NCBI GenBank assembly: GCA_038087875.1
Contig: CM075978.1
Coordinates: forward strand, 179,986,001 to 180,050,000
Length of the DNA stretch: 64,000 bases
Source of the DNA: Malacoraja senta
Lineage: Eukaryota
Reading direction: 5' to 3'
Shown here: positions 10,165 through 57,368 of the stretch, piece after piece
Numbering within the stretch: the stretch's first letter is position 1
Layout of the letters: each line of letters opens with the position of its first letter
Program-made: the position numbers and the translations under genes
Notes under the pieces: generated by a model
What the model was told of the DNA's origin: nothing
Seen by the model: the letters and a program-made list of their open reading frames with translations, nothing else
Database searches by the model: none

Positions 10165-10251
10165 TGCAGTTTTAACATTCCGAGCAAATCATTCAACTGA
10201 TGCCTCACTACGATATTCACTCTAAGCAATGGTTACTTTGAAATGTGTTGC

Positions 10252-24599: not shown

Positions 24600-26720
24600 T
24601 TTGTCTAGATATTTCTAGCAGTATCATTTTGAACACTTGCGGGTGGGCATTTGATGCATAGAGAGGCAGAACAAATGGGCTTAGTGGACAGGTAGTGATT
24701 CCGTTCAGGCGGAGGAGGTGGAGAGTACACAGTTCTAAACAGACCTCGAGAACTGAAAGTTACAACTTGTATGAGAATAAGGAGGACCAGGTATGTTCAT
24801 TAAAAACAGACAGGTGGGCAGAGGGGATGGGGTAGCTCTGTTGGTGAAGAATGAAATTCAGTCCGTTGCGAGGGGTGACATTGAATCAGGACAATCAGAA
24901 TCAGTTTGGATAGAATTGTAAGGGTAAAAATACCCTAATGGGAGTTATCCACAGACCCCAAACAGTAGCCTGGATATAGTGTGCAAGTTGAATCAAGAGT
25001 TAAAATTGGCATGTCGTAAAGGTAACGCTACGGTTGTTATGGGAGATTTCAACATGCACGTTGACTGGGAAAATCAAGTTGGTACTGGACCCCAAGAAAG
25101 GGAGTTTGTGGACTGCCTCCATGATGGATTCTTAGAGCAGCTTGTACTGGAGCCTACCAGGGAGAAGACAATTTTGGATTTAGTGTTGTGTAATGAACAG
25201 GATTTGATAAAGGGAACTCGATGTAAAGGAGCCATTAGGAGATAGTGACCATAATATGATAAGTATTAACCTACAATTTGAGAAGGAGAAGGGTAAATCG
25301 GAGGTGTCAGTATTACAGTTGAACAAATGGGACTTTGGAGCCATGAGGGAGGAGCTGGCCAAAGTTGATTAGAAAGATAACCTAGCAGGGATGACAGTGG
25401 AACAACAATGGCAGGTATCCAAGGGGAGTAAGGGGCGACCGTGGCTGACAAGGGACGTCAGGGACAGTATAAAAATAAAAGTGAAGTATAACATAACAAA
25501 GATGAGCGGAAAGCCAGAGGATTGGGTAACTTTTGAAGAACAACAGAAGGTAACTAAAAAGGCAATATGAGGAGAATAATGAGGTACGAAGGTAAGCTAG
25601 CCAAGAATATAAAGGAGAATAGTAGAAGCTTCTTTAGGTATGTGAAAAGGAAAAAATAGTTAAGATCAAAATTGGACCCTTGAAGACTGAAAAGGGCAAA
25701 TTTATTATGGGGATCAAGGAAATGGCAGACGAGTTGAACAGGTACTTTGGATCCGACTTCACTGAGGAAGACACAAACAATCTCCCTAATGTAGCAGTCG
25801 CCAGAGGATCTAGGGTGATGGAGGAACGGAAGGAAATCCACATTAGGCAGGAAATTGTGCTGGGTAGACTGATGGGACTGAAGGTTGCTAAATCCCCAGG
25901 GCCTGATGGTCTGCATCCCAGGGTACTTAAGGAAGTGGTTCTAGAAATCATGGACGCATTGGTGATCATTTTCCGATGTTCTATAGAATCAGGATCAGTT
26001 CCTGTGGATTGGAGGCTGTCTAATGTTATCCCACTTTTTAAGAAAGGTGGGAGAGAGAAAACAGGGAATTATAAATCAGTTAGCCTGACATCAGTGGTGG
26101 GGAAGATGCTGGAGGCAATTATAAAAGATGAAATGGCGGCACATTTGGATAGCAGTAGCAGGATCAGTCCGAGTCAGCACAAATTTACGAAGGGGAAATC
26201 ATGCTTGCCTAATCTTCTGGAATTTTTTGAGAATGTAACTAGGAAAATGGACAAGGGAGAGCCAGTGGATGTGGTGTACATGGACTTTCAGAAAGCATTT
26301 GATAAGGTCCCACATAGGAGATTAGTAGGGAAAATTAGAGCACATGGTATTGGGGGTATGGTGCTGACATGGATAGAAAATTGGTTGGCAGACAGGTAAC
26401 AAAGAGTAGGGATTAACAGGTCCCTTTCAGAATGGCATGCAGTGACTAGTCGGGTACTGCAAGGCTCTGTGCTGGGACCGTAGCTATTTACAATATATAT
26501 TAATGATTTAGATGATGGGATTAAAAGTAACATTAGCAAATTTGCAGATGACAAAGCTGGGTGGCAGTGTGAACTGTGAGGAGGATGCTATGAGGATGCA
26601 AGGTGACTTGGACAGGTTGGGTGAGTGGGCAGATGCATGGCAGATGCAAATTAATGTGGATACATGTGAGGTTATCCACTTTGGTGGCAAAAACAGGAAG
26701 GCAGCTTATTATCTAATTTA
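24600..26720 (+). mobile_element. CR1 LINE (endonuclease plus RT), degenerate
   Basis: VVMGDFN, KSPGPDGLHPRVLKE, YMDFQKAFDKVPH. Confidence 0.9.
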
Positions 26721-29700
26721 TAAAAAGCTGGATATAATTACTGGAAGATCTGTTCCTTTTTGGGCTGCGTAGGACGACTCCTACTTACCTGTGTAATAAT
26801 GGCAAGGGAAAGTTGGACATTGGAAAAGTTAGAAATTGCCATTGCAACCTCCATTCAATATGATCATGGCTGATCATCTCAAATCAGTACACCATATCCC
26901 TTGATTCCTTAAGCCCTAAGAGCTAAATCGAACTCTCTCTTGAAAACATCGAGTGAATTGGTCTCCACTGCCTTCTGTGGCAGGGAATTGCACAGATTCA
27001 CAACTCTCTGGGATCAAATGTTTTCCCTCATCTCAGTCCTAAATGGCCGACCCCTAATTTTTAAACTGTGACCCCTATTTCTGGACACCCTCAAAATCAG
27101 GGACATTTTTCCTGAATCAAGCCTGTCCAATCATTTAAGAATTCTATATGTTTCTATAAGATACCCTCCCATCCTTCTAAATTCCAGTGAATACAAGCCC
27201 AGTCAACCCATTCTTTCATCATATGTCATCCCCGCAATCCCAGGAATTAACCTTGTGAACCTACACTGCACTCCCTCAATAGCAAGAATGTCCTTCCTCA
27301 AATCTGGAGACCAAAACTGCACACAATACTCCAAGTGTAGTCTCACTATTAACCTGGTGAACATACGCTGCACTTCCTCAACAGCAATAATGTCCTTCCT
27401 CAGATTAGGAGACCAGATCTGCATACAATTCTCCAAGTGCGGTCTCACCAGGGCCCTGTACATCGGCAGGCGGATGTCCTTGCTCCTAAAATCTAATCCT
27501 CTTGCAATGAAGGCCAACATGCCATTAGCTTTCTTCATTGTATCTGCTCTATCTGCATGCTTACTTTCAGTGACTGATGTACAAGCACACTCATGTCTCG
27601 TTGCACCTCCCCTTTTCCTAATCTGAGACCATCCAGATAATAATCTGCCTTTGTGTTCTTGCCACCAAAGTGGACAACCTCACATTTATCCACATTATAC
27701 TGAATCTGCCATGCAACGTACACAGACTCACCCAACCTATTCAAGTCACCCTGCAGCCTCATACCATCCTCCTCGCAGCTCACACTGCCACCCAGCTTTG
27801 TGTCATCCACAAACCTGGAGATGTTACATTTAATTCCCTCATCTAACTCGTTAATATATATTGTAAATTACAGGTGTGCCAGTACCAAGCCTTGCAGCAC
27901 CCCACTAGTGACTGCCTGCATTCTGAAAAGTTACCATTAATTCCTACTCTTTACTCCCTGTCTGCCAACCAGTTGTCTATGGTGTCAAAGAGGGAATTGG
28001 AGGGCCATCTGAAATCAACGTACACAGCCAACCAAAGATTTGAGCAGAGGGGGATACCTCCAGACATGCCCCCATTCCTCAACCAGAACACCAGTTGGAC
28101 GACAGCCTCCCAAGGTGCAGCGAAGTCGAGAAGCCCGTAAGGAAGGCAAGGGCAACTTCAGCTCCAGGACCAAATGGAGTTCCATACCGGCTGTACAAAA
28201 ATGCTCCAAATGTTCTACGGTTCCTATGGAGGCAAATGAAGGTAGCATGAAAAAAGCAAACCATCCCAAAAGCATGGCGAAGAGCAGGGGGAGTGGTGAT
28301 CCGCAAGGAAAAAGATGTCTCAAACATCGACGTATTCCGGCAAATCAATCTCTTGAATGTTGAAGGGAAGATCTTCTTTAGCATTGTTGCTCAAAGGATG
28401 ATAACCTACCTGAAAGAACAACTTGATTGACACGTTGGTACAGAAAGCTGGTATACCAGGCTTCTCTTGATGCTTAGAACACACAAGCATGATATGGCAT
28501 CAAATCCAGCCTGCAAGAAGGGAAGGAAGAGATCTGCACGTCTTATTCCTGGACCTAGCCAATGCTTTTGGATCGGTTCCCCATTCTCTCCTCTGGACAG
28601 CCTTCGATTTCTTCCATGTGCCAAAGACCATTACAAACCTGGTCAGAAACTACTTCCAAGATTTACAATTCTGTATTACAACAGAATACACAACATCATG
28701 GCAATCACTGGAAGTGGGAATAATGGCAGGTTGCACCATCTCCCCGCTAGCCTTCACCATGGCGATAGAAGTGATCATCCGAGCTTCCAAGTGGGTCATA
28801 GGAGGAGAGCGGCTGCAGTCTGGGCAGCGGCTACCTCCCATTCTCACCGACATGGATGACATGACCACCCTGACCTCAACCATTGCATGTACCAAGCGCC
28901 TGCTGGAAAAGCTTCATGCGAACATAACATGGGCCCGGATGAAGTTGAAACCCAGCAAATTCAGGAGCATATCCATCATCAGAGGAAATATCGTAGACAA
29001 GCGATTCCACATTGATGAAACACCTATTCCGATGTGTTAGAGCTGCCGGTCAAGAGTTTAGGATGGTACAATGCAAGCCTCAAAGACTCAGACCAGTGTG
29101 ACCAACTGAGGGAAAAACCCATCAAAGGCCTTGCTAGCATAGACAAGACCTCGCTTCCTGGTAAGCTGAAACTGTGGTGCCTGCAGTTATGGATTGCTCC
29201 CCCGTCTGATGTGGGCCTCTGATGGTTTACGAGATCCCCATCACCAAAGTCGAGAAGTTGGAGAGGACAGTCAGTTCATACATCAAGAAGTGGCTTGGAC
29301 TCCCACGTTAGCCTCAGCAATATTGGCTTGTTTGGACACAGTGCTCTGGAACTGCCTGTCTCTAGCCTCATATAAGAATACAAATGCACCAAAGTGAGGC
29401 TGGACATGACCCTGACCGAATCTCAAGATGATGCGGTACGAGCGGCTGCTCCCAGACTGGCAACTGGGAGGAAGTGGACCCCATCGGAGGCTGTACAGCA
29501 AGCAAAATCTGCTCTCAGGCATGGAGACATTGTAGGACAGGTGCAGCAGGGAAGAGGTGGGATTGGACTCGGGACAAGTCGACCCACATGGTACACGGCA
29601 ACATCCACCCAGAGAAGAAAGCTGGTAGTTGCTGAGGTCCGTCAGCAAGAGGAGGCAGAGAGATGCGCAAAGGCAGTCTCACAGTCCAAACAGGGTCAGT

Positions 29701-40800: not shown

Positions 40801-40995
40801 CCACGTCGGTTGACACCTGGCTCGCCTATGGCATTTCCCACCAGGCCTGCCAGCTCGCCGGTCGTGTCCCCACTCCCTTCCCCTGTCTTTTCTCCCGCGA
40901 AAGGAGGTGAGGCTGTCTCCTACCGCACGAGAGCTGGACGGGTTTGCAAGCCACCTGTTAGATATGGCGATTTTGTATAATCTTGCTGCCGGGAA

Positions 40996-42620
40996 GTGGT
41001 GTTAGGTAAATTGAATGGAATAAAGGCCGATAAATCCCCAGGGCCAGATAAGTTGCATCCCAGAGTACTTAAGGAAGTAGCCCCAGAAATAGTGGATGCA
41101 TTAGTGATAATTTTTCAAAACTCTTTAGATTCTGGAGTAGTTCCTGAGGATTGGAGGGTAGCTAATGTAACCCCACTTTTTAAAAAGGGAGGGAGAGAGA
41201 AAACGTGGAATTACAGACTAGTTAGTCTAACATCGGTAGTGGGGAAAATGCTAGTCAGTTATTAAAGATGGGATAGCAGCACATTTGGAAAGTGGTGAAT
41301 TCATTGGACAAAGTCAGCATGGATTTATGAAAGGTAAATCATGTCTGACGAATCTTATAGAATTTTTCGAGGGTGTAACTAGTAGAGTGGATAAGGGAGA
41401 ACCAGTGGATGTGTTATATCTGGACATTCAGAAGGCTTTCGACAAGGTCCCACATAAGAAATTAGTATGCAAACTTAAAGCACACGGTATTGGGAGTTCA
41501 GTATTGATGTGGATAGAGAACTGGCTGGCAGACAGGAAGCAAAGTGTAGGAGTAAACGGGTCCTTTTCTGAATGGCAGGCAGTGACTAGTGGGGTACCGC
41601 AAGGCTCAGTGCTGGGACCCCAGCTATTAACAATATATATTAATGATCTGGATGAGGGAATTGAATGCAACATCTCCAAGTTTGTGGATGACACAAAGCT
41701 GGGGGGCAGCATTAGCTGTGAGGAGGATGCTAGGAGGCTGGAAGGTGACTTGGATAGATTGGGTGAGTGGGCAAATGCATGGCAGATGCAGTATAATGTG
41801 GATAAATGTGAGGTTATCCACTTTGGTGGCAAAAACAGGAAGGTAGACTATTATCTGAATGGTGGCCGATTATAGGAAAAGGGACGATGCAACGAGACCT
41901 GGGTGTCATGGTACACCAGTCATTGAAAGTAGGCATGCAGGTGCAGCAGGCAGTGAAGAAAGCGAATGGTATGTTAGCATTAATAGCAAAAGGATTTGAG
42001 TATAAGAGCAGGGAGGTTCTACTGCAGTTATACAGGGTCTTGGTGAGACCACACCTGGAGTATTGCGTACAGTTTTGGTCTCCTAATCTGAGGAAAGACT
42101 TTCTTGCTATAGAGGGAGTACAGAGAAGGTTCACCAGACTGATTCCTGGGGTGACAGGACTTTCATATGAAGAAAGACTGGATAGACTCGGCTTGTACTC
42201 GCTAGAATTTAGAAGATTGAGGGGGTATCTTATAGCAACTTACAAAATTCCTAGGGGTTGGACAGGCTAGATGCAGGAAGATTATTCCCAATGTTGGGAA
42301 AGTCCAGAACAAGGGGTCACAGTTTAAGGATAAGGGGGAAGTCTTTTAGGACCGAGATGAGAAAATCATTTTTTACACAGAGAGTGGTGAATCTGTGGAA
42401 TTCTCTGCCACAGAAGGTAGTTGAGGCCAGTTCATTGGCTATATTTAAGAGGGAGTTAGATGTGGCCCTTGTGGCTAAAGGGGTCAGGGGGTATGGAGAG
42501 AAGGCAGGTACAGGATACTGAGTTCGATGATCAGCCATGATCATATTGAATGGCGGTGCAGGCTCAAAGGGCCGAATGGCCTACTCCTGCACCAATTTTC
42601 TATGTTTCTATGTTTCTATG
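40996..42620 (+). mobile_element. CR1 LINE 3' 1.6 kb inside the Gypsy element
   Basis: [29 protein letters not shown]; (ctatgttt)n tail. Confidence 0.92.
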
Positions 42621-43895
42621 CTAACATATTCTTAGCATCCCCTCGTCATATTATTTAAGGCACCGTAGTTTATTTATTTTCTACAAGAAGAGATGTAGAT
42701 CGGCTATTGCATGCTAGCCAATCATTGTGCTTGTTAGTAGTAGCCCCGCCTAGTACATGCTTTATAATATTAAGAACTCGCCTATGTCAGGCAATAGGTG
42801 CAGCAGTCGGAGATGTAACTCCAATGCTGCAGCTGCAGATCCAATGCTGTAAGTGTTTAATAAAGATGTGTTGTATCTTTACATGTGTCTGAGTCTCGTA
42901 GTTACAGATCGGTGGGAGATGGAAGCCATCTTAGCTTCATCAACAGAGCCACCTACGATGTTCTTCCCTCACCCAAGAACCTAAACGAGTGGCTTGGAGA
43001 AGATCCATTATGTTCTCTCTGTCAAATCCCAGCAACATTAAGGCACATCCTCACTGGCTGCAAAACCAGTCTTTCACAAGGCCGCTACACCTGGAGGCAC
43101 AATCAGGTTCTGCGACAACTGGCAATTACCTTGGAAGGAAGAAGAACTCCCACCAATGCCTCCCTCCCCCACGCCTGGTTTCTCGAACACCACCCCTTTT
43201 GTAAAGGCAGGACAACTTCCAGAAAAGCCATTTGCAAGAAGGGAACCGACCCTCCTGGACACTGCCCGGGACTGGAAAATGCAGGCTGATCTAGACCAGA
43301 AGCTCATCTTTCCACCAGAGATCATCACAACCAATCTCATGCCGGACCTGATCTTGTGGTCAACCTCATAGAAGTCCCTGTACATCATGGAGTTAACTGT
43401 GCCTTGGGAGGCTGCAGTTGGGGAAGTGCATGAACGCAAATGTCTGAAGTATTCATAATTAGCAGCCGAGGCAGAACAATGCGGCTGGCATACCCAGGTG
43501 CTCCCTGTAGAGGTTGGTTGTAGAGGGTTTGTAGCCATGTCAACAACCAGACTCCTGAAGGGAATGAGAGTTCGAGGATAGGCCTTCCGGCAAGCCGTCA
43601 GGTTGCTGTCAGAGGCTGCCGAGCGAAGCAGCAACTGGCTGAGGCTGAAGAGGAAGGACTCCAATTGGGCTGCAAAATGACCAGCAAGTGGGGTAAAATG
43701 GAGGGGAGCACACCTGGGATGCCAGGTGTTGCTGTTGAGCCCTCTGGAGGTGTCGTGGGCCTATCAACAAAACATCAAGGAAGGAGGGTGCCCACCTGAT
43801 GACCCCACTGAAGCCTTTACCCCTACCCCCACTCAAGATATTAAGAAGGTGCCAATTGTAGTAGGGATTGTAATATCAAGTCTTATAAGCTCAAC

Positions 43896-46800
43896 AGATA
43901 AGCTGGAGAAATCCAGTGACTGCTGTGAAAATGCAGCTGACAACTAGGGAAAGACCATGTGATGGCGTGGAAAGACAGCTGTCAGGAGGAAAAGACCCCA
44001 ACGGGGTTAGCATGGACTAGCTATCCATGACGGCTGGCTCCGTCACTGTGAATTGTGAATAGGAGTCACCCCTCATGGCAACGAAAAATTTAAAGAGGAA
44101 AATACCCCCTGAGTCTGCGAGAGAGGGGGTGGAAGTTGACTCATCGGATGACAACCCGGTAACCGACCCTTGCATGAACACGATGACGAAGAAGATAATC
44201 GGCATGGCACTTACAACATCAGCTGCAGGACAAGAACTCCAAGAGTGTCGCTGTGGCTGGTCCAAGGTAACATCGATCAGAGGCCTATAAATACATCAAG
44301 GGCGGATGAAGTGCTTGAAGGAGGTGAGGCCTGGACCTCGCATTGATCAGTATCTCCTGAGAGAAAGATCAAATCAGTCGAGTGAAGCTCAGCGGCAGGA
44401 TACAACCCAGTCCAACGAGCATCAATACCCCAGTGGCTAAGGAGAATAATTCAAGCACAACATCTGAGAACCCGGAATCCAGCCAGACGCAGCCTGCTTT
44501 GGAGAAGAAGATGCAAGGCCACAGACATCATGTGAAGTGGCCAAAGTCCAGCAGCAAGAAAGAGTGGGCAACAATCGACGCAGACCTGAGTAAGATCCTA
44601 GACGGACTTCACGGAACAGTGGAGAAGAAACTGGAGAAAATGAGTGATCTGATCTACTTCTACGGGGCAGAAAGGTTCAGAACCAAAAAGAAGGAAACAA
44701 CAACCCCTCCAAAGCTCAGAAGGCAGCGAGAAATCGAGCGCCTAATCAAAGAGAGAAGGGACCCGAGGTAATGGTGGAGGAAATCCTCACTGGAGGAAAG
44801 AGTGGGCATCAACCTCCTGCAAGCAGATCTAATGGAATGCCTGGGAAGACTACGGAGAGCAGAAACCCTCAGAATTCAACGCAAGAAGAAGGAGAGGGCA
44901 AGAACATCATTCTACAAGCATCCCTTCAGATTTGTGAAAGGACTCTTCACAAAGGAAAAGACTGGGTCACTTAAGGTGTCAAAGAGGGAATTGGAGGACC
45001 ATCTGAAATCAACGTACACAGACTACCAAAGATTTGAGCAGAGGGGGATACTTCCAGACATGCCACCCATTCCTCAACCGGAACACCAGTTGGACAACAG
45101 CCTCCCAAGGTGCAGCGAAGTCGAGAAAGCCGTAAGGAAGGCAAGGGCAGCTTCAGCTCCAGGACCAAACGGAGTTTCATAACGGCTGTACAAAAATGCT
45201 CCAAATGTTCTAAGGTTCCTATGGAAGCAAATGAAGGTAGCATGGAAAAAGCAAACCATCCCAAAAGCATGGCGAATAGCAAGGGGAGTGGTGATCCCCA
45301 AGGAAAAAGATGCCTCAAACATCGACCAATACCGGCAAATCAATCTCTTGGATGTTGAAGAGAAGATCTTCTTTAGCATTGTTGCTCAAAGGATGATAAC
45401 CTACCTGAAACAGAACAACTTGATTGACACGTCAGTACAGAAAGCTGATATACCAGGCTAGTCTGGATCCTTAGAACACACAAGCATGATATGGCATCAA
45501 ATCCAGTCAGCAAGAAGGGAATGAAGAGATCTGCACGTCTTATTCCTGGAACTAATCAATGCTTTTGGATCTGTTCCCCATTGTCTCCTCTGGACAGCCT
45601 TCGAGTTCTTCCATGTGCCAAAGAACATTGCAAACCTGGTCAAGATTTACAATTCTGTATTACAACAACAGAATAGACAACATCATGGCAATCACTGGAA
45701 GTGGGAATAATGGCAGGTTGCACCGTCTCCCCGCTAGCCTTCACCATGGCGATGGAAGTGATCATCTGAGCTTCCAAGTGGGTCGTAGGAGGAGAGCGGC
45801 TGCAGTCTGGGCAGCGGCTACCTACCATTCGCGCCTACATGGATGACATGACCACCCTGACCTCAACCATTGCATGCACCAAGCGCCTGCTGGAAAAGCT
45901 TCATGCGAAATGACATGGGACCGGTTGAAGTTGAAACCCAGCAAATCCAGGAGCATATCCATCATCAGAGGAAAAATCGTAGACAAGCGATTCCACAATG
46001 ATGAAACACCCATTCCGATGGTATCAGAGCTGTCAGTAAAGAGTTTAAGACGGTGGTACAATGCAAGCCTCAAAGACTCAGACCAGTGTGACCAACTGAG
46101 GGAAAAAAACATCAAAGGCCTTACTATCATAGACAAGACCTCGCTTCCTGGTAAGCAGAAACTGTGGTGCCTGCAGTTTGGCTTGCTCCCCCATCTGATG
46201 TGGCCTCTGACCATCTACGAGGTCCCCATCACCAAAGTCGAAAAGTTGGAGAGGACAGTCAGTTCATACATCAAGAAGTGGCTTGGACTCCCGTGTTGCC
46301 TCAGCAATATCGGCTTGTTTGGACACAGCGCTCTGGAACTGGAAGTCTCTAGCCTCATAGAAGAATACAAATGCACCAAAGTGAGGCTGGACATGATCCT
46401 GGCCGAATGTCAAGATGATGCGGTATGAGCGGCTGCTCCCAGACTGGCAACTGGGCGGAAGTGGACCCCATTGGAGGCTGTACAGCAAGCAAAATCTGCT
46501 CTCAGGCATGGAGACATTGTAGGACAGGTGCAGCAGGGAAGAGGTGGGATTGGACTCGGGACAAGTCGACCCACATGGTACAAGGCAACATCCACCCAGA
46601 GAAGAAAGCTGGTAGTTGCTGAGGCCCGTCAGCAAGAGGAGGCAGAGAGATGCGCAAAGGCAGTCCCACAGTCCAAACCGGGCGAGTGGACTACCTGGTA
46701 AAACCTGGAGCATCGTAAGCTTACCTGGAATGATCTGTGGGAAATGGGAAGAAGCTGTCTTAGCTTCATCATCAGAGCCACCTACGATGTTCTTCCCACA

Positions 46801-47727
46801 CCCAGGAAACCAACCCAGTGGCTTGGAGAAGATTCATTATGTTCTCTCTGTCAAACCCCAGCAACATTAAGGCACATCCCCACTGGCTGCAAAACCAGTC
46901 TTTCACAAGGCCGCTACACCTGGAGGCACAATCAGGTCCTGTGACAACTGGCGATTACCTTGGAAGGAAGGAGAACTACCACGAATGGCCTCCCTCCCCC
47001 AACGCCTGGTTTCTCGAACACCACCCCTTTTGGAAAGGCAGGGCAACTTCCAGGGAAGCCATTTGCAAGAAGGGAACCGATCCTCCTGGACATTGCCCGG
47101 GACAGGAAAATGCAGGCTGATCTAGACCAGAAGCTCATCTTTCCACCAGAGATCATCACAACTAATCTCAGGCCGGACCTGATCTTGTGGTCAACCTCAC
47201 CGAAGTCCCTGTACATCGTGGAGTTAACTGTGCCTTGGGAGGTTGCAGTTGGTGAAGCGCATGAACGCAAATGTCTGAAATATTCAGACTTAGCAGCCGA
47301 GGCAGAACAACGCGGCTGGCGTACCCCAGGTGCTCCCTGTAGAGGTTGGTTGTAGAGGGTTTGTAGCCATGTCAACAACCAGACTCCTGAAGGGAATGGG
47401 AGTTCGAGGACAGGCCTTCCGGCAAGCCGTCAGGTCGCTATCAGAGGCTGCGAGCGAAGCAGCAACTGGCTTGTGGCTGAAGAGGAAGGACTCGTATTGG
47501 GCTGCAAAATGACCAGCAAGAGGGGTAAAACAGAGGGGAGCGCACCTGGGACGCCAGGTGTTGCTGTTGTGCTCTCTGGGGGTGTCCTGGGCATATCAAC
47601 CAAATACCAAGGAAGGAGGGTGCCCACCTGATGATCCCAATTAAGTCTTTACCCCTACCCCCACTCAAGATATTAAGAAGGCACCAATTGTAGTAGGGAT
47701 TGCAATATCAAGTCCTATAAGCTCAAC
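43896..47727 (+). mobile_element. Hero-type non-LTR element, copy 2, near full length, degenerate ORF
   Basis: N-terminal Cys/His motif (CRCGW...IHQGRMKC), RT (AYMDDMT), CSLC...RHNQVL, RPDLILWS...ELTVPWE...KYSDL; 3' end identical in layout to copy 1. Confidence 0.88.
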
Positions 47728-48872
47728 TCCATGTCAATACTCTACCACCAATACCATGTGCTCTAATTTTGCACACTAAACTCTTGTGTGAGTCCTTGTC
47801 TTTTTGAAAGTCCAGATACACCACATCCACTCGCTCTCCCTTATCCATTCTACTTGTCATATCCTCGACAAAATCCAAAAGATTAGTCAAACATTATATC
47901 CCCTTCATAAATCCATGCTGACTTTGATCGATCCTGTCACTGCTTTCCAAATGTGCTGCTGTTACACCTTTAATAATCGACTCAAGCATCTTCCCCACTA
48001 CCTGGCATATAATTCCCCATTTTCTCTCTCTCTCCTTTCTTAAAACGTGGAGTTATGTTAGCTACCCTCCAGTCCACGGGAACGGATCCAGAGTCTATCG
48101 AACACTGGAAAATGATCACCAATGCATCCATGATTTTTAGGGCCACCTCCTTGAGTATGGGATGCAGACCATCTGGCCCTGGGAGAATAAAGAGGGAAGA
48201 TTAGACTTTATTGCCTTCCATCACAGTGAGGAATGTAGGGAATCCCCTGTGGTGGATGTATATGTTGACTTTTATGTAGTTGTGTGTCTTGTTCCTTTTT
48301 CTAGTATGGCTGTATGGTAAACCGAGTTTCACTGTACATTAATTGGTACTCGTGACCATAAAATACATTTGAAACCTTTGAAACCTTTTATCTGCCTTTA
48401 GTCCCAACAGTTTACATCACACCATTTCCTCACTAATGTGGATTCCCTTCAGTTCCTCCCTCCCGCTAGATCCTCAGTCTCCCAGTATATCTCCAGTATT
48501 TAAGAAACTTGATCAAGGCATCCTTGGGCTCACAGATATTCTCGCATTCCATGACTATCCACGCAATTAAAATCTAAAATTATGCAAATAAAACCACTAA
48601 ATGCGATTCTTCCCGATAGCTGTCGAAAGCTGAAGTAGACTCTACTCGGTGTTAAATTTGACATCTAGATGAGCAGTGGACAATATCGGTGTCAACAGCA
48701 ACAAAATCTGAATCTTGATCGCAGCACCGATTCTTCCTCTGCTTTAATGGCCCTGATGCATTCGGCTATGACGTTCTTTTACCTTTTAGTTCTACTATTC
48801 GGACTTGTCATTTCCATCTGTTGTTGTACTTGGATATAGTTGTGATGATGGCAATATATTGTATAACCCCAT

Positions 48873-49014
48873 CTTCTTCTTCTTCTTTCGTGTGGCGTGC
48901 ACAGCCTAAAGTTGTTGGACAACTTGTTCTATTTGATCTTCCGTTTGTGCACGTCGAGTTGATTGCATTAGTCGAAACAGGGCAGACCACGTGAAGGTTG
49001 CAATCTTCCACCCC
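48873..49014 (-). mobile_element. 142-bp SINE-like insertion with (GAA)n tail
   Basis: Absent from the gene A arm; flanked by gtataaccccat / gtataatcccat (11 of 12 match). Confidence 0.8.
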
Positions 49015-49310
49015 GTATAATCCCATGCTAGATCAATTACAATGGCGTCCAGCAACACAGGGGTCCCTTAATTAAATTATTGCACGTTTTGGAATTATCG
49101 GCGCACATTGTCCCATACTCTGTCGGTAATCGCGCCCTGATCTCTGGCATTTAGGAATTCCCCAACTCTGATAATTCGCTAGTTTAATTGCGATCTAAGA
49201 TCCAAATTCTACAATTATTTTCAAAAACCTTCTCGCTTCGCTTTCGCCCTGCAGAAAACACCTCCCAAACATTATTTTGTTAGTTACCGGATGCACTCTT
49301 ATTTATGTTC

Positions 49311-49370
49311 TTTCACCAGCGAATGCGAAGTGTCGTCCCACCCACGTAAGAAAACGCGCCAAACGTCATC
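49311..49370 (+). promoter_or_regulatory. Putative proximal promoter motifs of gene B
   Basis: ccagcgaatgcgaagtg...cacgtaag...aaacgtca is conserved in all three leader-upstream regions. Confidence 0.35.
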
Positions 49371-49457
49371 GCACCACATTTCAAAGTAACCATTGCTTAA
49401 AGTGAATATCGTAGTGAGGCATCAGTTGAATGATTTTCTCCGAATGTTAAAACTGCA

Positions 49458-49503
49458 ATGTTTCTGGTCCCGATTCTGTCTCTCTCCATGATTATTTGCA
49501 CAG
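49458..49503 (+). CDS. Gene B exon 1, signal peptide [15 protein letters not shown]
   Basis: ATG at 49458, donor AG|GTACTT, phase 1. Confidence 0.9.
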
Positions 49504-52500
49504 GTACTTGAACGATCTCATATAGACTTATCTAAATGCCGAAATATCCAAAACTATTCCTGGCTTAACTGATGAAATCTATTTGTTCTATTTGTCTGTT
49601 AGTTTTGTTTTTCATGCCAATGTATTATCAAAAGAGTTGGTTCTACGTTGAATATAATTAACCAAATCTTAAACGTTTTTCCAACAGCTGCTGAAGAAAC
49701 TGCGATCCACGTTACCCAAATTCCAGAACGAAAGGTTATATTGAAGGGAGCAAACGTCACCTTTCACTGCATAATCCCACTTACGTATGACATTTCGGGA
49801 ATCGAAGTGCGTTGGCGAAAACAGGGGGAGAATGAATATATACAAAGCGACGCTGGTGGCAGAAAGCGATTCAGCGTCAAAAATAGAGCAGGCGGATATT
49901 TTGATTTGCTGAACACGACCTACCAGGATTCGGGAAACTATCGCTGTATAGTAATGCGTCAGGGGGAAATTAGGGGAGAAGGAAGAGGGTCAGAACTAAC
50001 AGTATGTGGTGAGTGACAAAAGTGAGCAGAATACCTGAGAATATTGCACAAGATTTATATTTCTATATTAGAGTTCCGATTTCTGAGAGAGAAGGGCCCA
50101 ATGAAATTATGTGAAAACCCATACAATTTGATGCTCGTTTTAGTGAATGTACAACGTTCAATATTATTATGCCGAAAATATATGTTAAAAATACAGCAAA
50201 TAAGATGTATTTCAAAACAGGTAACAATAGCTTTCAATCAAGAGATCGTCACACCTTCAAATACGATCCAGCATAAATCACTATAAATTGCACCTCCAAA
50301 AGATTCCACGTTTCATGTCATTGAACACTGGTTGAGTTGAAACAGAATTAACTTTCCGCGGCGGTTCTTGCGCTCCGCTGTATGATGTGACAGATATCAA
50401 TAATTCGTTAACTTCTGTCTTGAAGGGACCGGGTAAAATAGGTGGATTTCTAAACAAGCTGGGACTGGCAGAGGTTTGCTTCCTTCTCCTACTGTCTTTG
50501 TTTAATTTCATCCCAGTAATATGATATTTTCGTACTCTGCCCCACAGCCCTTCCAACTCCACTGAAGCTTAACTGGATATCCGAGAGCAATTCATCTGCA
50601 GCTACAACGCTTGTCTGTAAAACGGCTGAGTTTCACCCGGGTGATCTAACCGTTATATGGTATAAAAATAGCGTTGCTGTTACAACTAAGGCTGATACCA
50701 TTAAACAGAAAAATAGTGAAGGGCTGTACACGGCTTCCAGTTCAATACCCATGACGCAGTCGGAGGCCAACGGGAATATTTACATTTGTCTGGTGATGCA
50801 CATCTCCCTCCAAAGACCCGCCATTGCCACGCACGCCCTTCGCAAACCTGACCAAGGTATGACTTGAAACACCGTATAATTTTAAACTTATTATTGAATG
50901 CGTTTCTTGATGTTGACAAAGTCNNNNNNNNNNNNNNNNNNNNNNNNNNNNNNNNNNNNNNNNNNNNNNNNNNNNNNNNNNNNNNNNNNNNNNNNNNNNN
51001 NNNNNNNNNNNNNNNNNNNNNNNNNNNNNNNNNNNNNNNNNNNNNNNNNNNNNNNNNNNNNNNNNTCTATTCTAACGGGTCCCAGAAAAACTCATTATTT
51101 CTGGTAACTCTGGAAGTATGAATATGAGATGGAAGGGATGGTATTTATTTTCCCTCTAAACATTTTGCGTCGTTTGCTCATTCTCCCGAGGCTTCATACT
51201 AAATTTATTGTTTAGTTTACATTGCCGGATTTCGTGACAGATGTCGAGGAACGTTACGTCGTTTCTTTGTTCTGGAGCCTACCCCTAAAATAGTGCATCT
51301 CTTTCATTTCGGAGATTCCAGAATTGAGTTGTCAGGATGTTTCCTTTCCAAGCCATGGGCAATGGGCTCGGAAGCTCCCTCCTTTATTTTACACGGCCTC
51401 ATCCTTTTCACTAATATCGTACTAAATTATGGATTCACAGAAATAATGGCAATGTATATTTATATAACTGGAAGGTACACAAAAATGCTGGAGAAACTCA
51501 GCGGGTGCAGCAGCATCTATGGAGCGAAGGAAATAGGCGACGTTTCGGGCCGAAACCCTTCTTCAGACTGATAGGGGGTGGGGAACAAAAAGGAAAAAAG
51601 GAAAAAGGCGGAGGAGGAGCCCGAGGGCTGGGGGAGGGGAGGAGACAACCAGAGGGCTGATGAAGGGGAGGGGACAGCAAGGGCTAGCAGAATTGGGAGA
51701 ATTCAATGTTCAAGCCCCCAGGATGTAGACTGCCCAAGCGGAATATGAGGTGCATTTCCTCCAATTTACGGTGTTGCTCGCTGTGGCCATGGAGGAGACC
51801 CAGGACAGAGAGGTCAGATACGGAATGGGAGGGGGAGTTGAAGTGCTGAGCCACCGGGAGGTCAGGTTGGTTATCCCCGGATGCTCGAGAAAATGTGTTT
51901 TCCGCCTTCAATAATCGTTGCAATCTCTGTGTGAATGGACAACATATGTGGAACTGTGGCTATGATGGTGGAGTGCGAAATGTGCCTACTTTCATTACCC
52001 TCGCTGATGAAAGTAGCCGGTTTGGTAGTTACTGTCGAACTAATCTTGGCGAGCCCTCTATTTTTATCTGCTTCACACGCACTATCGCGATGCAGGATCT
52101 AATAAACAATAACATAAGCATGGTCTGAAGAAGGGTCGAAACGAAATGAAAGGGTCGAAACGAAGGGTTGACCCGAAACGTCGCCCATTCCTTCTTTCCA
52201 GAGATGCTGCCTGTCCCACTGAGTTACTCCAGCATTTTGTGTCTAACTTCGATTAAAACCAGCATCTGCAGTTCTTTCCTACACAATAAAATGAGCATGA
52301 TGTACTGATCCTTGCTACTGCAGATCAGCGAAGGATATTAAATATAGTGTTTTACTCAATTCAAGCGAATTGTTGGTCAGAGTATGGGGCGCCATAGTTT
52401 ATTCTATTGCCAAGCCAAGTCAAGTAAAAGAAACATTACTCCCTTCCAGCAATACGTATTCACCTGTCTTTAAATAATGCTCAGTACACCGGAGACTGAT

Positions 52501-55500
52501 ACGGTGCAAATTATTCACGGCACGCAAATTACTCAGGTCGCATGTTACATTTTGCCAGAAAAAATAATTACGGATGTCAGAATAAAAAATACTTTAAAAA
52601 TTAAATGCAAATGTGATTATCTTTTTACAGTTATCTCGCGCTATTCCGTGTAGTTATCGTAAGCTTATAAATCAGTTCAGTCACAAGTAATTCAAATAAC
52701 TATTCTTTTAACGTATCAAAAGTACCCAAAGTGGAATTCATTATTTTTCCTCATCTTTCAGAACTCGATAACAAATATTTCTATATCTGGGCTTCTGGAA
52801 GCGCGGTCGGTGGAATCGGCATTTTGGTGTTTGTATTTATCATTGTCCTGAGGTGCCGTTCGACAAATAAAAGCAAGTATTATGCTCACCGATGTGTTTT
52901 CTGAGAACCTAGACAACACCGCAGATAATGAATACAATTTCTAAATGATAGAGCTGCTATGCAATTTTGCAGGAATTCGAATTGCACCGGACATGACCGG
53001 TAATTCAGTATTTATAATTTAATAGTGATCACAGAAGAAATAAATATAAATATTATTCTGCTTATTTGCAAGAGTATGTTTCAATTTTACATATGGAAAA
53101 GCGAAATCTAGATACATTTCAGGTGCAACTGGTTTGAGCAGGATGGTATTAGTGCCCAGTCGAGAGGAAATAGCGGATGCTTGGCGGGCTCACATTTTTA
53201 ACTTAAATATGATATGTCAAAATAATTTCCAACCACAAATGCAAACTTTATGCTGTTCATTAAGGAATTGTAGAGAACTATCCTCATTTGCTACACATGA
53301 AAATCCAATTCTCACCATGATCTCTTATTGATAAACTTTCTAACATTGTTTCAAAACTTCCCATTTGGTTGAATCTGCAAGAGTCCTCCAATTACCCACC
53401 TCCCCCCGCCACAGTTCATTCAAAACTTTTCTCGATACGATAAGGAACGACACATTATAGACAAGGGCAATCGCAATCGCAATCGAAGTCAAAGGGGATA
53501 GTATTTAGACGCAGCAGTGTGAAGCGTTGTGAACACCTTTTTTCGAAAAGATATTTGAAGTAAAATCTCATGTGACGGATGCAGTATAGATCTCAATGTA
53601 ATCGTTGGATTATGACATGCTGAATAACACGTTAATGTTGCTTAGATATATAATCTTGTAGTTTTATCTGATTTAAAATAAATAATGTAGTAATCGCACA
53701 AAAATATCGTTGAATATTAAGAAACGTGGAAACTAGAGGGAGACAGAAAGGCCTGGATAGAGGGGATGTGTAGAGGATGTATCCACTTGTGGGAGAGTCT
53801 AGGACCAGAGACCATAGCCTCGGACTAAAATGACGTACATTTAGAAAGAAAGGGAGGAGGAATTTCTGCAGTCAGGATGGTGAATCCGTGGAAGTCATTG
53901 CCACAGAAGACTATGAAGGCCAAGTGAATGGATATGTTTAATGGCGGAGAGTGATAGATTCTTGATTAGTACGGGTGTCAAAGGTTATGGGGAGAAAGCA
54001 GGAGAATGGGGTTGAGAGGGAAAGACAGGTTAGCCATAATTGAATGGCGGAGTAGACTTGATCGGGCGAATGGCTTAATTCTGCTCTTATAATGTATTAA
54101 TATATGAACAGTAAACGCTGCATTTGCGTGTGACAGTTGCATTCTGCATTTGAAGTAAGATAACGTTTCTCACTTAAATAACGCCTGTCTTAAATAACTC
54201 AATTATTCACGAGTTTATATTAAATTAATCATATCATACTAGAAACATAATATTGTGTTTCCTCTCTCCGTGAAATTCATTGTCCTCGTTAAAGAAAGAA
54301 CGGTTCTTATAATTGCACCAACCCTCAAAGTCTTGCATCGTTTAACGATGTTCTCGGATATGAATTTAACCCGAATTTCAATGAATGAAATCATCCTTTG
54401 ATATTGCTTGATGCTTTGGATGGGCAATTTCATTGAAGAGTCCGCGAAGCTCCAAAAATGCTCTTCGTCACTTTTACAATTCACAATGTTCATGCATATA
54501 CATAATCGAATATATGTGTGACTGTGTGCATTGCCCGTCATTTTTGCTGAATGGATAGCACATTGGCTCCATGGAAGGAAGCAGAGGGTGATAGTGGAAG
54601 GTTTCTTCTCAGAATGGAGGCCAGTGACTAGTGGTGTGCCACAGGGTTCGGTGCTGGGCCCGTTATTGTTTGTCATCTACATCAATGATTTTGGAGAACA
54701 TACAGGGCCAGATTAGCAAGTTTGCTGATGATACAAAAGTTAGCGGTTTTGCAGCAGGATCTGGATCGATTGGAATTTATTCTTGATGGAATTTAATACA
54801 GAGAAGTGTGAGGTGTTACATTTTGGGACGTCGAACAAGGGCATGACATACACGGTAAATGGTAGGCCTCTGGCTAGTGTTGTAGAGCAGAGGGATCTAG
54901 GAGTACAAGTGCATGGTTCCTTGAAGGTCGAGTCACAAGTAGATAAGGTGGTCAAAAAGGCTTTTGCCACTGGCCTTCATCAGTCAGAGTATTGAGTATA
55001 GAAGTTGGGAGGTCATGTTGCAGTTGTATAAGAAGTTGGTGAGACCGCATTTAGAATATTGTATTCAGTTCTTGGCACCATATTATAGAAAAGATATTGT
55101 CAAGCTTGAAAGGGTTCAGAAAAGATTTACGAGGATGTTGCCAGGACTAAAGGGTGTGAGCTATAGGGAGAGGTTAAGCAGTCTGGGTCTCTATTCCATG
55201 GAGCGTAGGAGGATGAGGGGAGATAGAGGTATATAAAATCATGAGAGGAATAGATCGGGTAGATGCACATTCTTTTACCCAGAGTAGGGGAATCGAGCAT
55301 CCGAGGACGTAGGTTCAAGGTGAAGGGGAAAAGATTTAATAGGAATCCCAGGGGTAACTTTTTCACACAGAGGGTGGTGGGTGTATGGAACAAGCTGCCA
55401 GAGGAGGTCATTGAGGCGGGGACTATCCCATCGTTTAAGAAACAGTTGGACAGGTAACTGGATAGGATAGGTTTGGAGGGTTATGGATCAAGCGCAGACA

Positions 55501-57368
55501 AGTGGTAGCTGGAACATTATTGGCCAGTGTGGACGAGTTGGGCCGAAGGGCCTGTTTCCACAGTGTATCACTCTATGACTGTATGACTATTTAATCTCAT
55601 TGCTCATCGCTTTCCCTGCATACAATGATAGTCTCTTGTTTTACTGTTACCATAAAAAAAGTATTAATAGGACACGGGAAAATGTTTTACCGTTATTTAT
55701 AATTTAATTTCATTAACTTTTAGAGCCAAGAAGTACCGGGGGCCATGAAGAATCGGTATGCATTTATGTATATATACATATATATTACATTTGAGAAAAC
55801 GGTTGAAGCATCTATAAATAAAGTTGTAAAACAAGTATTCTGTCAGAACTATTTCGCAAAAGTATCAATCGCTATCGCGGATCTGTTAAATTGGGTTTAA
55901 CATTAATTTGACGGCAGTTGCGACGTTTGTGTAAGTGGTTATAGGAAGAGACAAATTAAATTGATTAATTAATTCCGCATATACGTAAATAATAACTACA
56001 TTCATCGATCCAAGTTACGTTTGAACTCAGTAATTCCACCTAGTGATGCTGAATGACAGTGAAACCCATCAAGTTTAAGTTCAGTAGATAAATTCTACTT
56101 AAAACCCATACAGGTCTTCTAGTTTTAGATTTATAAACTATATCTTTTGTATGTGTTTGGAATTTACTCCATTGCGCTTACTGGCAAATGCGCAAACAAC
56201 GATAATGGCACGTGCAGTCATGTAAATTATTTTCTTTCTGATCCATGCAGGTTGAAGCGAACAACACCCTGACTTATTCTGCTGTAGATATGAGCAATTC
56301 CAAAAGGAAATTGAGACAGAAAAGCGAAGAGGAGACAGCCTATGCACGAGTAAGATTTTGCAGCACATAAAGAAAACATAGAACGCGGCGCAGAAAATAG
56401 GTGTAAAAGAGCCATATCCTAATATCATAAATCATGAGACATAGAGCCCATCGAGTCTGCTCTGTCATTGGATCATGGCTGATTTATTTTTCCCACTCAA
56501 CCTCATTCTGCTGCCATATCTCCGTAATCTTTGACAACCTTACTAATCAAGAATATTGTTAAATCTTTGCTTAGAAAATATCCAATAAATTGTCCGCCAC
56601 TTCCGTCAATGAATCTTCTATCCAAGAATCAAGAGTCAATAATGTTTTATTGTCATATGTCCCACCCAGGCTAGTACCTTGCCTCTAACACCATGAACTC
56701 CTATCTTGTTCAGCAGCTTCATGTGGGTCCTGAAAATCCAAGTAAACGTGGTCCATGGTCTCTCCTTTGTCCATCTCCCCTTAAAACTATGCTGACTTCG
56801 GCCTGTTTGACAATATTTTAAGTACCCCGAAACCTCATCATTCGTAATGTACACTAATATCAGACCAACCACTGAATGTCTGGGATTATAGGCACAAGTG
56901 ACTGCAGATGCTGGAATCCTGTCCAAAAAACCCGAAGCTTTTTGCATCCGAGGAAGGAAAAATCAGGTGCCATTTTAATCCAAAGAAGGGTCGAGATCCA
57001 TCACATAGTTTCTTATTTTTCTTCCACAGATGTTGCCAGGCCTACAGTGTTCGTTCCTCCGGCACGTTGTCTATTTACTCAATATCTGCGTTTGTCCCAA
57101 CGTTGGTAGTGTGGCGCGTCTAAAGTTGTTCCGATGTTTTTGATATCTGACTTGATCCGCAGGCCACAAAGTGGTTCAACAATGACATATTTTGCAACCG
57201 TTGGTTTTTCAGGTAAAACAAGGGGCCGCCCGGGAAGTACTTACATACGCATCTGTGGAATTGTCTCAACCCGGGAATGCTGGTAAAGTTAAAGCCAGGG
57301 ATAAGATCACGGAATATGCAGCGCTGCAGACGGCAAATCCACGAAGAGTAAAAGAAGACGGAAAGTAA
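49458..57368 (+). CDS. Gene B: VJ-C1-TM Ig-superfamily receptor, inhibitory type (SIRPalpha-like tail), 366 aa. Join 49458-49503, 49688-50008, 50548-50856, 52762-52872, 52973-52999, 55724-55755, 56251-56349, 57213-57368
   Basis: Exon lengths 46+321+309+111+27+32+99+156 = 1101 nt give one open frame ending in TAA; all acceptors AG, donors GT except one GC. Confidence 0.85.
49688..50008 (+). CDS. Gene B exon 2, Ig V-set domain with joined J-like strand
   Basis: Same motifs as gene A; 6 nt differences in 321. Confidence 0.95.
50548..50856 (+). CDS. Gene B exon 3, Ig C1-set domain
   Basis: [10 protein letters not shown]...[20 protein letters not shown]...[10 protein letters not shown]...PDQ; 3 nt differences from gene A in 309. 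Confidence 0.93.
50924..51064. other. Assembly gap (141 N) in gene B intron 3
   Basis: Run of N. Confidence 1.
51470..51880 (-). mobile_element. Penelope-like fragment
   Basis: [17 protein letters not shown]...[24 protein letters not shown]. Confidence 0.8.
52762..52872 (+). CDS. Gene B exon 4, uncharged transmembrane [37 protein letters not shown]
   Basis: Acceptor tcatctttcag; GC donor AA|GCAAGTATTATGCT aligns with the gene A donor CT|GTAAGTATTATGCT. Confidence 0.85.
52973..52999 (+). CDS. Gene B exon 5 (27 nt, RIRIAPDMT)
   Basis: Acceptor ttttgcag, donor CG|GTAATT, phase 1 to 1. Confidence 0.7.
53720..54090 (+). mobile_element. CR1 3' fragment in a gene B intron
   Basis: gagtctaggaccagag...ggttatggggagaaagcagg...gaatggc 3' UTR. 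Confidence 0.75.
54530..55590 (+). mobile_element. CR1 3' fragment in a gene B intron (sense)
   Basis: [24 protein letters not shown], (ctatgact) tail. Confidence 0.88.
55724..55755 (+). CDS. Gene B exon 6 (32 nt, [11 protein letters not shown])
   Basis: Acceptor taacttttag, donor CG|GTATGC; supplies the phase 1-to-0 change needed to read the ITIM exons. Confidence 0.7.
56251..56349 (+). CDS. Gene B exon 7, ITIM plus ITSM: [33 protein letters not shown]
   Basis: Acceptor ttctttctgatccatgcag, donor GA|GTAAGA, 99 nt, phase 0 to 0. Confidence 0.85.
57213..57368 (+). CDS. Gene B terminal exon, ITIM plus ITSM-like: [51 protein letters not shown]
   Basis: Acceptor ggtttttcag, phase 0, stop TAA at 57366-57368. 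Confidence 0.85.
   Translation, partial: VKQGAAREVLTYASVELSQPGNAGKVKARDKITEYAALQTANPRRVKEDGK

Follow-up and report, generated by a model that had tools for sequence, protein, structure and literature searches.

Background

Paired receptors with a common face and opposing signals are thought to evolve where a pathogen has come to exploit an inhibitory receptor and the host counters with a look-alike that activates. Described examples include SIGLEC11/SIGLEC16 of primates and SIGLEC5/SIGLEC14, in which an inhibitory and an activating receptor have been homogenised by gene conversion (PMC5701461, PMC4042635). SIGLEC11 and SIGLEC16 lie head-to-head, 9 kb apart, with a converted 5' region of about 3 kb in which the tracts are fragmented and constraint is relaxed (PMC5701461). 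Concerted evolution of the N-domain in CEACAM1-related pairs has been interpreted as a decoy, or counter-measure, against pathogens that exploit the inhibitory member (PMC2832619, PMC7042247). The UrIg and UrIg2 genes of elasmobranchs are non-rearranging VJ-C genes, with conversion between Ig-domain exons within one gene (PMC12227049). A literature search found no paper describing the cartilaginous-fish V(J)-C1 family that databases label 'SIRP-like'.

Here we analyse a window of 64,000 nucleotides from the skate Malacoraja senta (contig CM075978.1, positions 179,986,001 to 180,050,000) that contains two such genes, A and B. They probably form a couple of an activating-type and an inhibitory receptor, belonging to a cartilaginous-fish V(J)-C1 family, in which a common 5' module has been overwritten by gene conversion at least two times.

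Two divergent genes with a common 5' module

Repeat finding and BLAST delimited two inverted arms, at 8352-10971 on the minus strand (gene A) and 48525-51384 on the plus strand (gene B), in a head-to-head, divergent arrangement and 37.5 kb apart. Aligned by BLAST and MAFFT, the arms define a module of about 2.6 kb, consisting of 0.93 kb of 5' flank, the leader, V and C1 exons, and roughly the initial 0.5 kb of the intron after C1. The 5' edge of arm B is abrupt, with identity passing from 96% to none at 48525, and the 3' edge is stepped. For comparison, we used the Leucoraja erinacea orthologue of locus A (L001, hereafter LeA), which represents the A side only; it is collinear with window positions 12831 to 378, differs from locus A by 5.8-7.0% at neutral sites, and has both junctions of arm A at the orthologous place. 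Exon borders were set from canonical AG/GT sites and homology to the L. erinacea protein P0152, and splice sites are canonical in all exons.

At the sequence level gene B is intact, with seven exons and an open coding sequence of 1071 nucleotides (356 amino acids), an uncharged transmembrane (TM) segment and a tail with four tyrosines in ITIM/ITSM motifs. Its leader exon (49458-49503, plus strand, 46 nucleotides, phase 1) was located by tblastn with P0152 and ends in a GT donor. An open reading frame at 48768 had been a candidate leader and was ruled out; homology to P0152 places the leaders at 49458-49503 and 10164-10119, and 48768 is 5' flank. An octamer, ATGCAAAT, at 48582 and 10913 was likewise rejected as a promoter element, lying about 875 nucleotides upstream of the ATG and being altered in L. 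erinacea. The V exon (49688-50008, plus strand, 321 nucleotides, AG/GT) encodes a germline J-like motif and matches the Pfam V-set at 26.2 bits, and the 309-nucleotide exon at 50548-50856 (plus strand) matches the Pfam C1-set at E=7e-14. The uncharged TM exon follows at 52762-52876 (plus strand), and its product is 49-59% identical to those of inhibitory genes from Heterodontus, Pristis, Hemitrygon and Mobula. Scanning for exons of length 3n+1 bounded by AG and GT yielded a predicted mini-exon of 25 nucleotides (55731-55755, plus strand; STGGHEES), which holds the tail in frame and is similar to TAGHEDL in Pristis. The tail itself is encoded at 56251-56349 and 57213-57368 (plus strand; tblastn with P0004 and P0145, and splice sites), where the motifs read LTYSAV, TAYARV, LTYASV and TEYAAL.

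Gene A has leader, V and C1 exons as in B, joined to a very different TM exon that bears an arginine (6852-6951, minus strand; IWSSVRSAVVIAFLF...). The encoded segment reads IWSSVRSAVV..., and both the arginine and the open reading frame are kept in L. erinacea, at 97% nucleotide identity versus about 93.4% at neutral sites. No ITIM exons were found downstream of this exon. Judged on its sequence, gene A would thus be of activating type. The TM exons of the two genes barely align (59% identity in DNA, 36% in protein), as the earlier note on this DNA had observed.

At locus A the module is flanked by what is left of an older gene of the family. Immediately upstream of the arm, at 10971-11259 (minus strand), lie a pseudo-leader (11259-11215) with its intron and some 60 nucleotides from the start of a V exon, and L. 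erinacea has the same remnant. We considered whether this pseudo-V runs on into arm A and could rule this out: identity to V exons is 76% up to 10971 and 42% past it, so that the remnant junction coincides with the edge of the arm. Between the C1 and TM exons of A lies a C1-like pseudo-exon (7985-8181, minus strand) that is 77% identical to C1 exons in nucleotides, is frameshifted and has a cysteine replaced by tyrosine. An extension of the arms as far as a SINE that is 90% identical between the loci (A 8326-8212, B 52172-52286) was also ruled out; its flanks are unlike on both sides, indicating independent insertions in A and B.

Divergence between the arms is tiered

The first reading of this DNA had proposed an identity gradient across the arms, and its counts were reproduced exactly: 315/321 for V (B 49688-50008, A 9932-9612), 306/309 for C1 (B 50548-50856, A 9082-8774) and 43/46 for the leader (B 49458-49503, A 10164-10119). 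The leader-V intron, put at about 95%, is 175/183 or 95.6% identical, and the lower upstream patches correspond to 48839-49339, at 85.8%. The sharp drop in the post-C1 intron is also real, but the rough figure of 70% given for it was too low, as identity there measures about 79% (73-76% at 50898-50923 and 80% at 51066-51384). Uniform divergence, which that reading had held to speak against conversion, is not what the arms display: binary segmentation divides them into stretches of 4.5%, 14.2%, 3.5% and 20.9%. By sequence class, the exons diverge by 1.4%, the introns and 5' flank by 4-6%, the upstream patch by 14% and the post-C1 intron by 21%.

The upstream patch (48839-49339, plus strand) includes a 154-nucleotide insertion present only in B (48868-49021). 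Over 46 nucleotides of the patch, at 49030-49075, B agrees with LeA against A (B-LeA fragment, P=5e-4), and the nine A-specific changes clustered there supply part of its 14%; its divergence is, at least in part, not simply a measure of age.

The longest run of identity between A and B extends over 212 nucleotides (50686-50897, plus strand); permutation gives P=5e-4 when restricted to the high-identity tract and P=5e-5 when the whole arm is considered. A permutation test of the Sawyer/GENECONV type, the kind of check that the earlier note had called for, singles out the same fragment, with 12 consecutive concordant variable sites (P=1e-4). A 150-nucleotide window of it is 6.7% different from LeA. 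It is probably the youngest conversion tract, and it extends 41 nucleotides past the C1 exon into the intron, where the breakpoint at 50897/50898 opens onto the old tier of the arms (50898-51384, plus strand), about 21% diverged from A.

That the exons are the most similar segments could be taken to mean that A and B are ordinary old duplicates whose ectodomain exons were held similar by purifying selection. Exons do differ less than the adjacent introns (9/626 against 45/908, Fisher P=2e-4), but the differences in them carry no mark of constraint: pN is 0.0146 and pS 0.0141, seven of the nine changes are non-synonymous, and with pN close to pS, purifying selection does not explain the gradient. 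There are two synonymous differences, whereas the intron rate predicts 7.1 (P=0.03). Identity of 94-96% also extends over the introns and 0.9 kb of 5' flank, the exons change almost neutrally between species, where they differ by 4-5%, and the high identity enters the intron for 41 nucleotides and then ends within a few bases. Selection on old duplicates is already contradicted by these observations, and we give it almost no credence.

The breakpoint and the assembly gap

The only run of N in the window, an intronic gap of 142 N at 50924-51065, begins 26 nucleotides to the right of the identity switch, and this proximity raises the question of an artefact, either because the join across the gap put an A-like ectodomain from one contig in front of an unrelated ITIM gene, or because short-read polishing homogenised the exon blocks. 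The switch at 50897/50898 nevertheless falls inside read sequence, and positions 50898-50923, ahead of the gap, already differ from A by 27%. On both sides of the gap the sequence is collinear with arm A (A 8704 versus B 50922; A 8654 versus B 51071) and likewise with LeA, and the right flank resumes at the collinear intron position with matching divergence against both A and LeA. In place of the 142 N, A has 49 nucleotides and the L. erinacea orthologue 47. The gap starts 67 nucleotides beyond the C1 splice donor, within the intron, and it interrupts no reading frame, as the following exon begins only at 52762. As for polishing, the arms differ by 117 substitutions and several indels, including the 154-nucleotide insertion, and at 53 sites in the high-identity part of the arm, B agrees with LeA against A, which A reads cannot yield. 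An assembly error is therefore a very improbable source of the pattern.

Clustering by species and by gene

The earlier note had predicted that the V and C1 exons would cluster by species and the TM and tail exons by gene, and this holds on the A side. We counted sites in three sequences as shared by A and B, by A and Le, or by B and Le. In the V and C1 exons the counts are 25:7:1, in introns 1-2 with the leader 30:21:23, and in the post-C1 intron (intron 3) 15:47:12. The patterns are heterogeneous across five segment classes (chi-square P=4e-10), and exons differ from intron 3 at P=7e-7 (Fisher). Against the L. erinacea orthologue the V/C1 exons are 3.5-5.5% different. In the ectodomain protein tree A and B of the window are sisters (89/86) within a skate clade (100/100), whereas in the TM exon tree A joins LeA (100/100) and B joins the inhibitory genes of Pristis, Mobula and Hemitrygon (82/93). 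Relative to LeA and the outgroups, A and B have about four to five derived residues in common, among them R94 and R98.

No B orthologue from L. erinacea or another skate came up when P0004, P0152 and the C1 open reading frame of L. erinacea were used as queries, or when the V open reading frame of that species was looked up by exact match. P0001, a V-exon open reading frame on a Logan contig that is one residue off LeA, might be a B copy.

Some of these data would also fit a simpler course, in which a single partial duplication or cassette replacement of the 5' module took place around or after the species split and unequal mutation together with selection produced the gradient. In the 5' flank and introns 1-2 the pattern is star-like, with A, B and LeA nearly equidistant and A-B divergence (4.5-5.9%) similar to that between the species; an AU test on the ectodomain protein is weak, failing to reject a clade of A with LeA (p=0.14); and the 5' edge at 48525 is abrupt. 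With no older homology past it, that edge resembles a junction left by duplication or insertion more than the terminus of a converted stretch. A single event, however, predicts one level of divergence and one topology, where we find levels of 0-2%, 4-6%, 14% and 21% and the marked topological heterogeneity given above. It also leaves the synonymous divergence of the exons below the intron rate despite pN being close to pS, and it does not account for the identical 212-nucleotide fragment. Finally, collinear homology of older date continues on the far side of the 3' breakpoint, with 79% identity in intron 3 and 59% in the TM exons, which points to exchange between paralogues that already existed. 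Taken together, we consider a single event unlikely.

A proposed history of repeated overwriting

The divergence mosaic, the switch in topology and the Sawyer-type tract thus support gene conversion of the ectodomain as the source of the A-B gradient, as first suggested in the earlier note. That suggestion had also included an old inverted duplication later homogenised. The older homology bears out its age, but a whole-gene inverted duplication does not agree with the anatomy, which is that of a module of about 2.6 kb. The claim that homogenisation was repeated agrees with the divergence tiers, its basis being these tiers and one orthologue.

The following history would account for the observations. 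The module would have been common to both loci since well before the split from L. erinacea, its oldest surviving layer being about 21% diverged, some three times as much as the two species are. On at least two later occasions, parts of the module would have been overwritten by non-reciprocal exchange between the inverted copies. The 5' flank and introns 1-2 would retain a layer of 4-6%, about as old as the species split, and the V and C1 exon blocks a younger layer of 0-2%, whose 3' end is the breakpoint 41 nucleotides into the intron. The near-identical outer exons of A and B would thus reflect DNA copied between the genes more than once, although the 4-6% layer could be the product of one event near the species split and not of repeated conversion. 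It is plausible that the inverted orientation lets conversion proceed without deletion. The outcome would be nearly the same ligand-binding face on A and B, coupled to opposite signalling.

It is quite possible, if a little short of probable, that this is the first documented non-mammalian head-to-head inhibitory/activating pair with recurrently converted ligand-binding exons, and that A arose not by whole-gene duplication but when a promoter-to-C1 cassette was inserted into an older gene of the family, with a truncated V on one side and a decayed C1 on the other, so that this gene acquired the face of the inhibitory receptor.

Comparison with known receptor systems

Public gene sets label the relatives P0004, P0145, P0146 and P0151 as SIRP-like, and database names of relatives are inconsistent ('tapasin-related', 'SIRP beta-1-like', 'PTPNS1-like'). 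Like SIRP-alpha/SIRP-beta, the skate pair carries its V domain, which includes a J-like strand, at the N-terminus and a C1-set domain after it, and has both ITIM-tailed and basic-TM members. Unlike SIRPs, which are V-C1-C1 with a lysine in the TM segment, the skate genes have one V and one C1 exon each, and the basic TM residue is an arginine; the second C1-like element of A (8181-7985) is frameshifted and has lost its cysteine. Orthology to mammalian SIRPs, or binding of CD47, is suggested only by the automatic names of relatives.

With UrIg/UrIg2 the skate pair has in common germline, non-rearranging VJ and C1 genes in cartilaginous fish and gene conversion of Ig exons. UrIg has many C domains, whereas in the skate genes the TM and tail exons come after a single C1, and the match to PDB 9dmx (UrIg2) amounts to C1-domain similarity only. 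The UrIg study makes no mention of SIRP, ITIM or activating/inhibitory pairing (PMC12227049). CEACAM1-related pairs resemble the skate pair in that ligand-binding exons coevolve by species and signalling exons are gene-specific; they are mammalian and belong to another family with another domain type.

The closest likeness is to the SIGLEC pairs. In both cases adjacent head-to-head genes have a near-identical 5' region of about 2.4-3 kb, comprising upstream sequence and ligand-binding exons; one gene has an ITIM and the other a basic TM residue, with differing TM and cytoplasmic parts; and the converted stretches are fragmented, with the converted exons under relaxed constraint. The skate pair differs in combining V(J) with one C1-set domain instead of V with C2-set, in its occurrence in a cartilaginous fish, and in its spacing of 37.5 kb versus 9 kb. 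With a near-identical ectodomain beside a diverged TM segment, an ITIM opposed to a basic TM residue, clustering by species and by gene (for the A orthologue only) and a conversion tract, the evidence, all of it from sequence, supports classing A and B as putative paired receptors of the SIGLEC11/16 type with a gene-converted ectodomain.

Conversion in such pairs keeps the activating look-alike up to date. The skate lineage is some 450 million years removed from mammals, and the occurrence of this genomic design there suggests that the strategy is as old as jawed vertebrates. If so, the 'decoy' logic of paired receptors and the swapping of ectodomain cassettes would be an ancient jawed-vertebrate strategy, and A and B offer a concrete gene pair in which to hunt for ligands. 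The features common to the skate and mammalian designs are head-to-head genes, a converted 5' region of about 2.4 kb and unconstrained ligand-binding exons, here in an antigen-receptor-like V(J)-C1 family.

Organization of the two receptor genes

Repeat finding and BLAST delimited two copies of a module comprising the 5' flank, leader, V and C1 exons and the start of post-C1 intron 3: arm A (10971 to 8352, minus strand) in gene A, and arm B (48525 to 51384, plus strand) in gene B. The arms are divergently oriented, with a 37.5-kb spacer rich in retroelement copies. Much of it is occupied by large copies (25850-29610 and 40992-47727) with reverse-transcriptase-like ORFs, which are 91-97% identical to one another and have relatives upstream of the Leucoraja erinacea gene. 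An octamer, ATGCAAAT, is present in both arms (48582 and 10913) about 875 nt 5' of the leader ATG; ATGCAACT takes its place in the L. erinacea orthologue.

Exon limits were set by homology to the L. erinacea protein P0152 plus canonical AG/GT sites. Each gene has leader, V and C1 exons of 46, 321 and 309 nt, in phase 1 throughout (49458-49503, 49688-50008 and 50548-50856 on the plus strand in gene B; 10164-10119, 9932-9612 and 9082-8774 on the minus strand in gene A), with V-set and C1-set Pfam domains (C1-set E=7e-14). Four further plus-strand exons lie 3' of C1 in gene B: a transmembrane (TM) exon (52762-52876), a predicted 25-nt mini-exon (55731-55755; STGGHEES), and two tail exons (56251-56349 and 57213-57368). 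Joined, all exons form an open frame of 1071 nt (356 aa) with four tyrosine motifs, similar in size and layout to the 'SIRP-alpha-like' proteins of Mobula (355 aa) and Hemitrygon (357 aa). The mini-exon is required for the in-frame ITIM tail, since splicing TM directly to tail reaches a stop after 7 codons. The 3' end of gene A is a prediction: its TM exon (6951-6852, minus strand) carries an arginine (IWSSVRSAVV...), and no ITIM exons were found 3' of it within the window. This exon, arginine included, is retained in L. erinacea at 97% nucleotide identity, versus about 93.4% in neutral flanks. On these motifs, B would act as an inhibitory and A as an activating receptor.

Divergence between the arms

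Recounting reproduced exactly the identities of an earlier note for V (315/321), C1 (306/309) and leader (43/46), and placed its leader-V intron estimate of about 95% at 95.6%. A-B divergence is far from uniform, with segments spanning 1.4% to 20.9%. It is 4.5% over 48525-48838, rises to 14.2% at 48839-49339, a segment of lowered identity already noticed upstream that contains a 154-nt insertion private to B, and falls to 3.5% over 49340-50897 (exons 1.4%, introns 5.0%). The sharp rise reported in the post-C1 intron is present, though at 20.9% divergence (50898-51384) rather than the roughly 70% identity estimated. Homology ends beyond 51384, and the TM exons, said to align poorly, share 59% DNA and 36% protein identity. 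The longest identical run, 212 nt at 50686-50897, is significant by permutation both within the tract (P=5e-4) and across the whole arm (P=5e-5). Copies of a SINE-like short repeat (8212-8351, 52170-52286, 51440-51589, 863-962 and 2542-2648) in some cases adjoin the 3' ends of both arms; the copies beside arms A and B share 90% identity yet differ in flanking sequence, indicating independent insertions.

The only N run of the window (50924-51065, 142 nt) starts 67 nt 3' of the C1 donor, inside the post-C1 intron of gene B; being intronic, it interrupts no reading frame. On either side of it, the sequence remains collinear with arm A (at 8704 and 8654) and with the L. erinacea orthologue. The corresponding stretch measures 49 nt in arm A and 47 nt in the orthologue, so the missing sequence probably falls short of 142 nt. 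The identity switch at 50897/50898 is off the gap, and the final 26 read bases 5' of the gap are already 27% diverged from A.

Could selection account for the similarity of the exons? Seven of the nine exon differences are non-synonymous (pN 0.0146, pS 0.0141), synonymous differences number two, against 7.1 expected from the intron rate (P=0.03), and perfect identity continues 41 nt into intron 3 before collapsing within a few bases. Judged by these sequence patterns, selection is rejected as the explanation.

Comparison with Leucoraja erinacea

The single comparison species was L. erinacea. The P0152 locus on its chromosome CM054023.1 is collinear with window positions 12831 to 378 (minus strand) and is thus the orthologue of locus A. 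Both junctions of the arm are present there, as are the upstream remnant (pseudo-leader and pseudo-V), the pseudo-C1 and the Arg-TM exon, so the presence of the module in locus A predates the divergence of the two skates. The RefSeq model of this orthologue (10001-11374 of the L. erinacea locus; 228 aa, 'tapasin-related protein-like') runs through the C1 donor (..GQGMT*) and omits the conserved Arg-TM exon at about 13117-13216. Upstream of locus A, window positions 12831-17610 (about 4.8 kb), which include a 99% inverted repeat at 17310-17615, are missing from the collinear locus (which skips from 6945 to 6843) and are likely a lineage-specific insertion. Homology searches and an exact V-ORF look-up found no B orthologue in L. 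erinacea or other skates.

Neutral substitution divergence between the two species at locus A is 5.8-7.0%. Three-way site patterns (shared by A and B, by A and L. erinacea, and by B and L. erinacea) were 25, 7 and 1 in the V and C1 exon blocks; 30, 21 and 23 in the leader and introns 1-2; 6, 5 and 9 in the 5' flank; 10, 22 and 22 in 48839-49339; and 15, 47 and 12 in intron 3. They are heterogeneous across the five segments (chi-square P=4e-10; exons versus intron 3, Fisher P=7e-7). The last 150 nt of C1 are identical in A and B, and each is 6.7% off the orthologue. Sawyer/GENECONV-type permutation on variable sites supports the A-B fragment 50686-50897 (P=1e-4) and a fragment shared by B and L. 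erinacea at 49030-49075 (A 10595-10550; P=5e-4), where nine substitutions private to A cluster in 46 nt. This cluster hints at a further exchange with another copy in one lineage: a third paralogue could have donated a short tract to A by micro-conversion, or B could have converted A in L. erinacea.

Trees rooted with batoid and shark relatives placed the A and B ectodomains as sisters (89/86), nested in a skate clade with the L. erinacea orthologue (100/100). The TM exon of A instead joined L. erinacea (100/100), and that of B the inhibitory genes of Pristis, Mobula and Hemitrygon (82/93); B TM identity is 49-59% to these and a Heterodontus gene, and only 36% to A. Site patterns and trees thus bear out, on the A side, the prediction that V/C1 would cluster by species and TM by gene. 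A and B share four or five derived residues relative to the orthologue and outgroups. At the protein level, the AU test did not reject an ectodomain grouping of A with L. erinacea (p=0.14), leaving the argument to rest on the DNA site patterns.

Probable layers of exchange and proposed origin of the module

The evidence fits the gene conversion proposed earlier, acting between already existing paralogues and leaving three or more layers of different age. The oldest, intron 3, would date to about 3 times the species-split age, the 5' flank and introns to about 0.7-0.9 times, and the exon blocks to about 0.2 times. On its 3' side, the young layer stops within older collinear homology, as expected for homology-driven exchange. 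Since the last homogenisation, B has gained seven private exon changes and A one.

The accompanying proposal of an old duplication needs refining, in that the event seems not to have been a whole-gene one; the module in A looks inserted. Its upstream neighbour is the initial 60 nt or so of an older V exon, preceded at a distance of 185 nt by a leader of its own (11259-10971, minus strand); downstream, ahead of the Arg-TM exon, lies a frameshifted C1 exon with a Cys to Tyr change (8181-7985, minus strand). These remnants (pseudo-leader, its intron and V start at 10971-11259; C1 at 7985-8181) occupy conserved positions in L. erinacea. Bracketing arm A as they do, they suggest that a promoter-to-C1 cassette may once have been inserted into an older Arg-TM family member.

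Comparison with known paired receptors

A and B belong to a cartilaginous-fish V(J)-C1 family, named inconsistently in gene sets ('SIRP-like', 'tapasin-related', 'PTPNS1-like'). The family has one C1 domain whereas SIRPs have two, and it is distinct from UrIg/UrIg2 (PMC12227049). No account of conversion between paired receptors of cartilaginous fish turned up in the literature searched. The geometry of A and B matches that of SIGLEC11/16, which lie head-to-head 9 kb apart; there, a converted region of about 3 kb takes in the V exon together with sequence upstream, the tracts are fragmented and constraint is relaxed (PMC5701461). The pair also resembles coevolving CEACAM pairs (PMC2832619).
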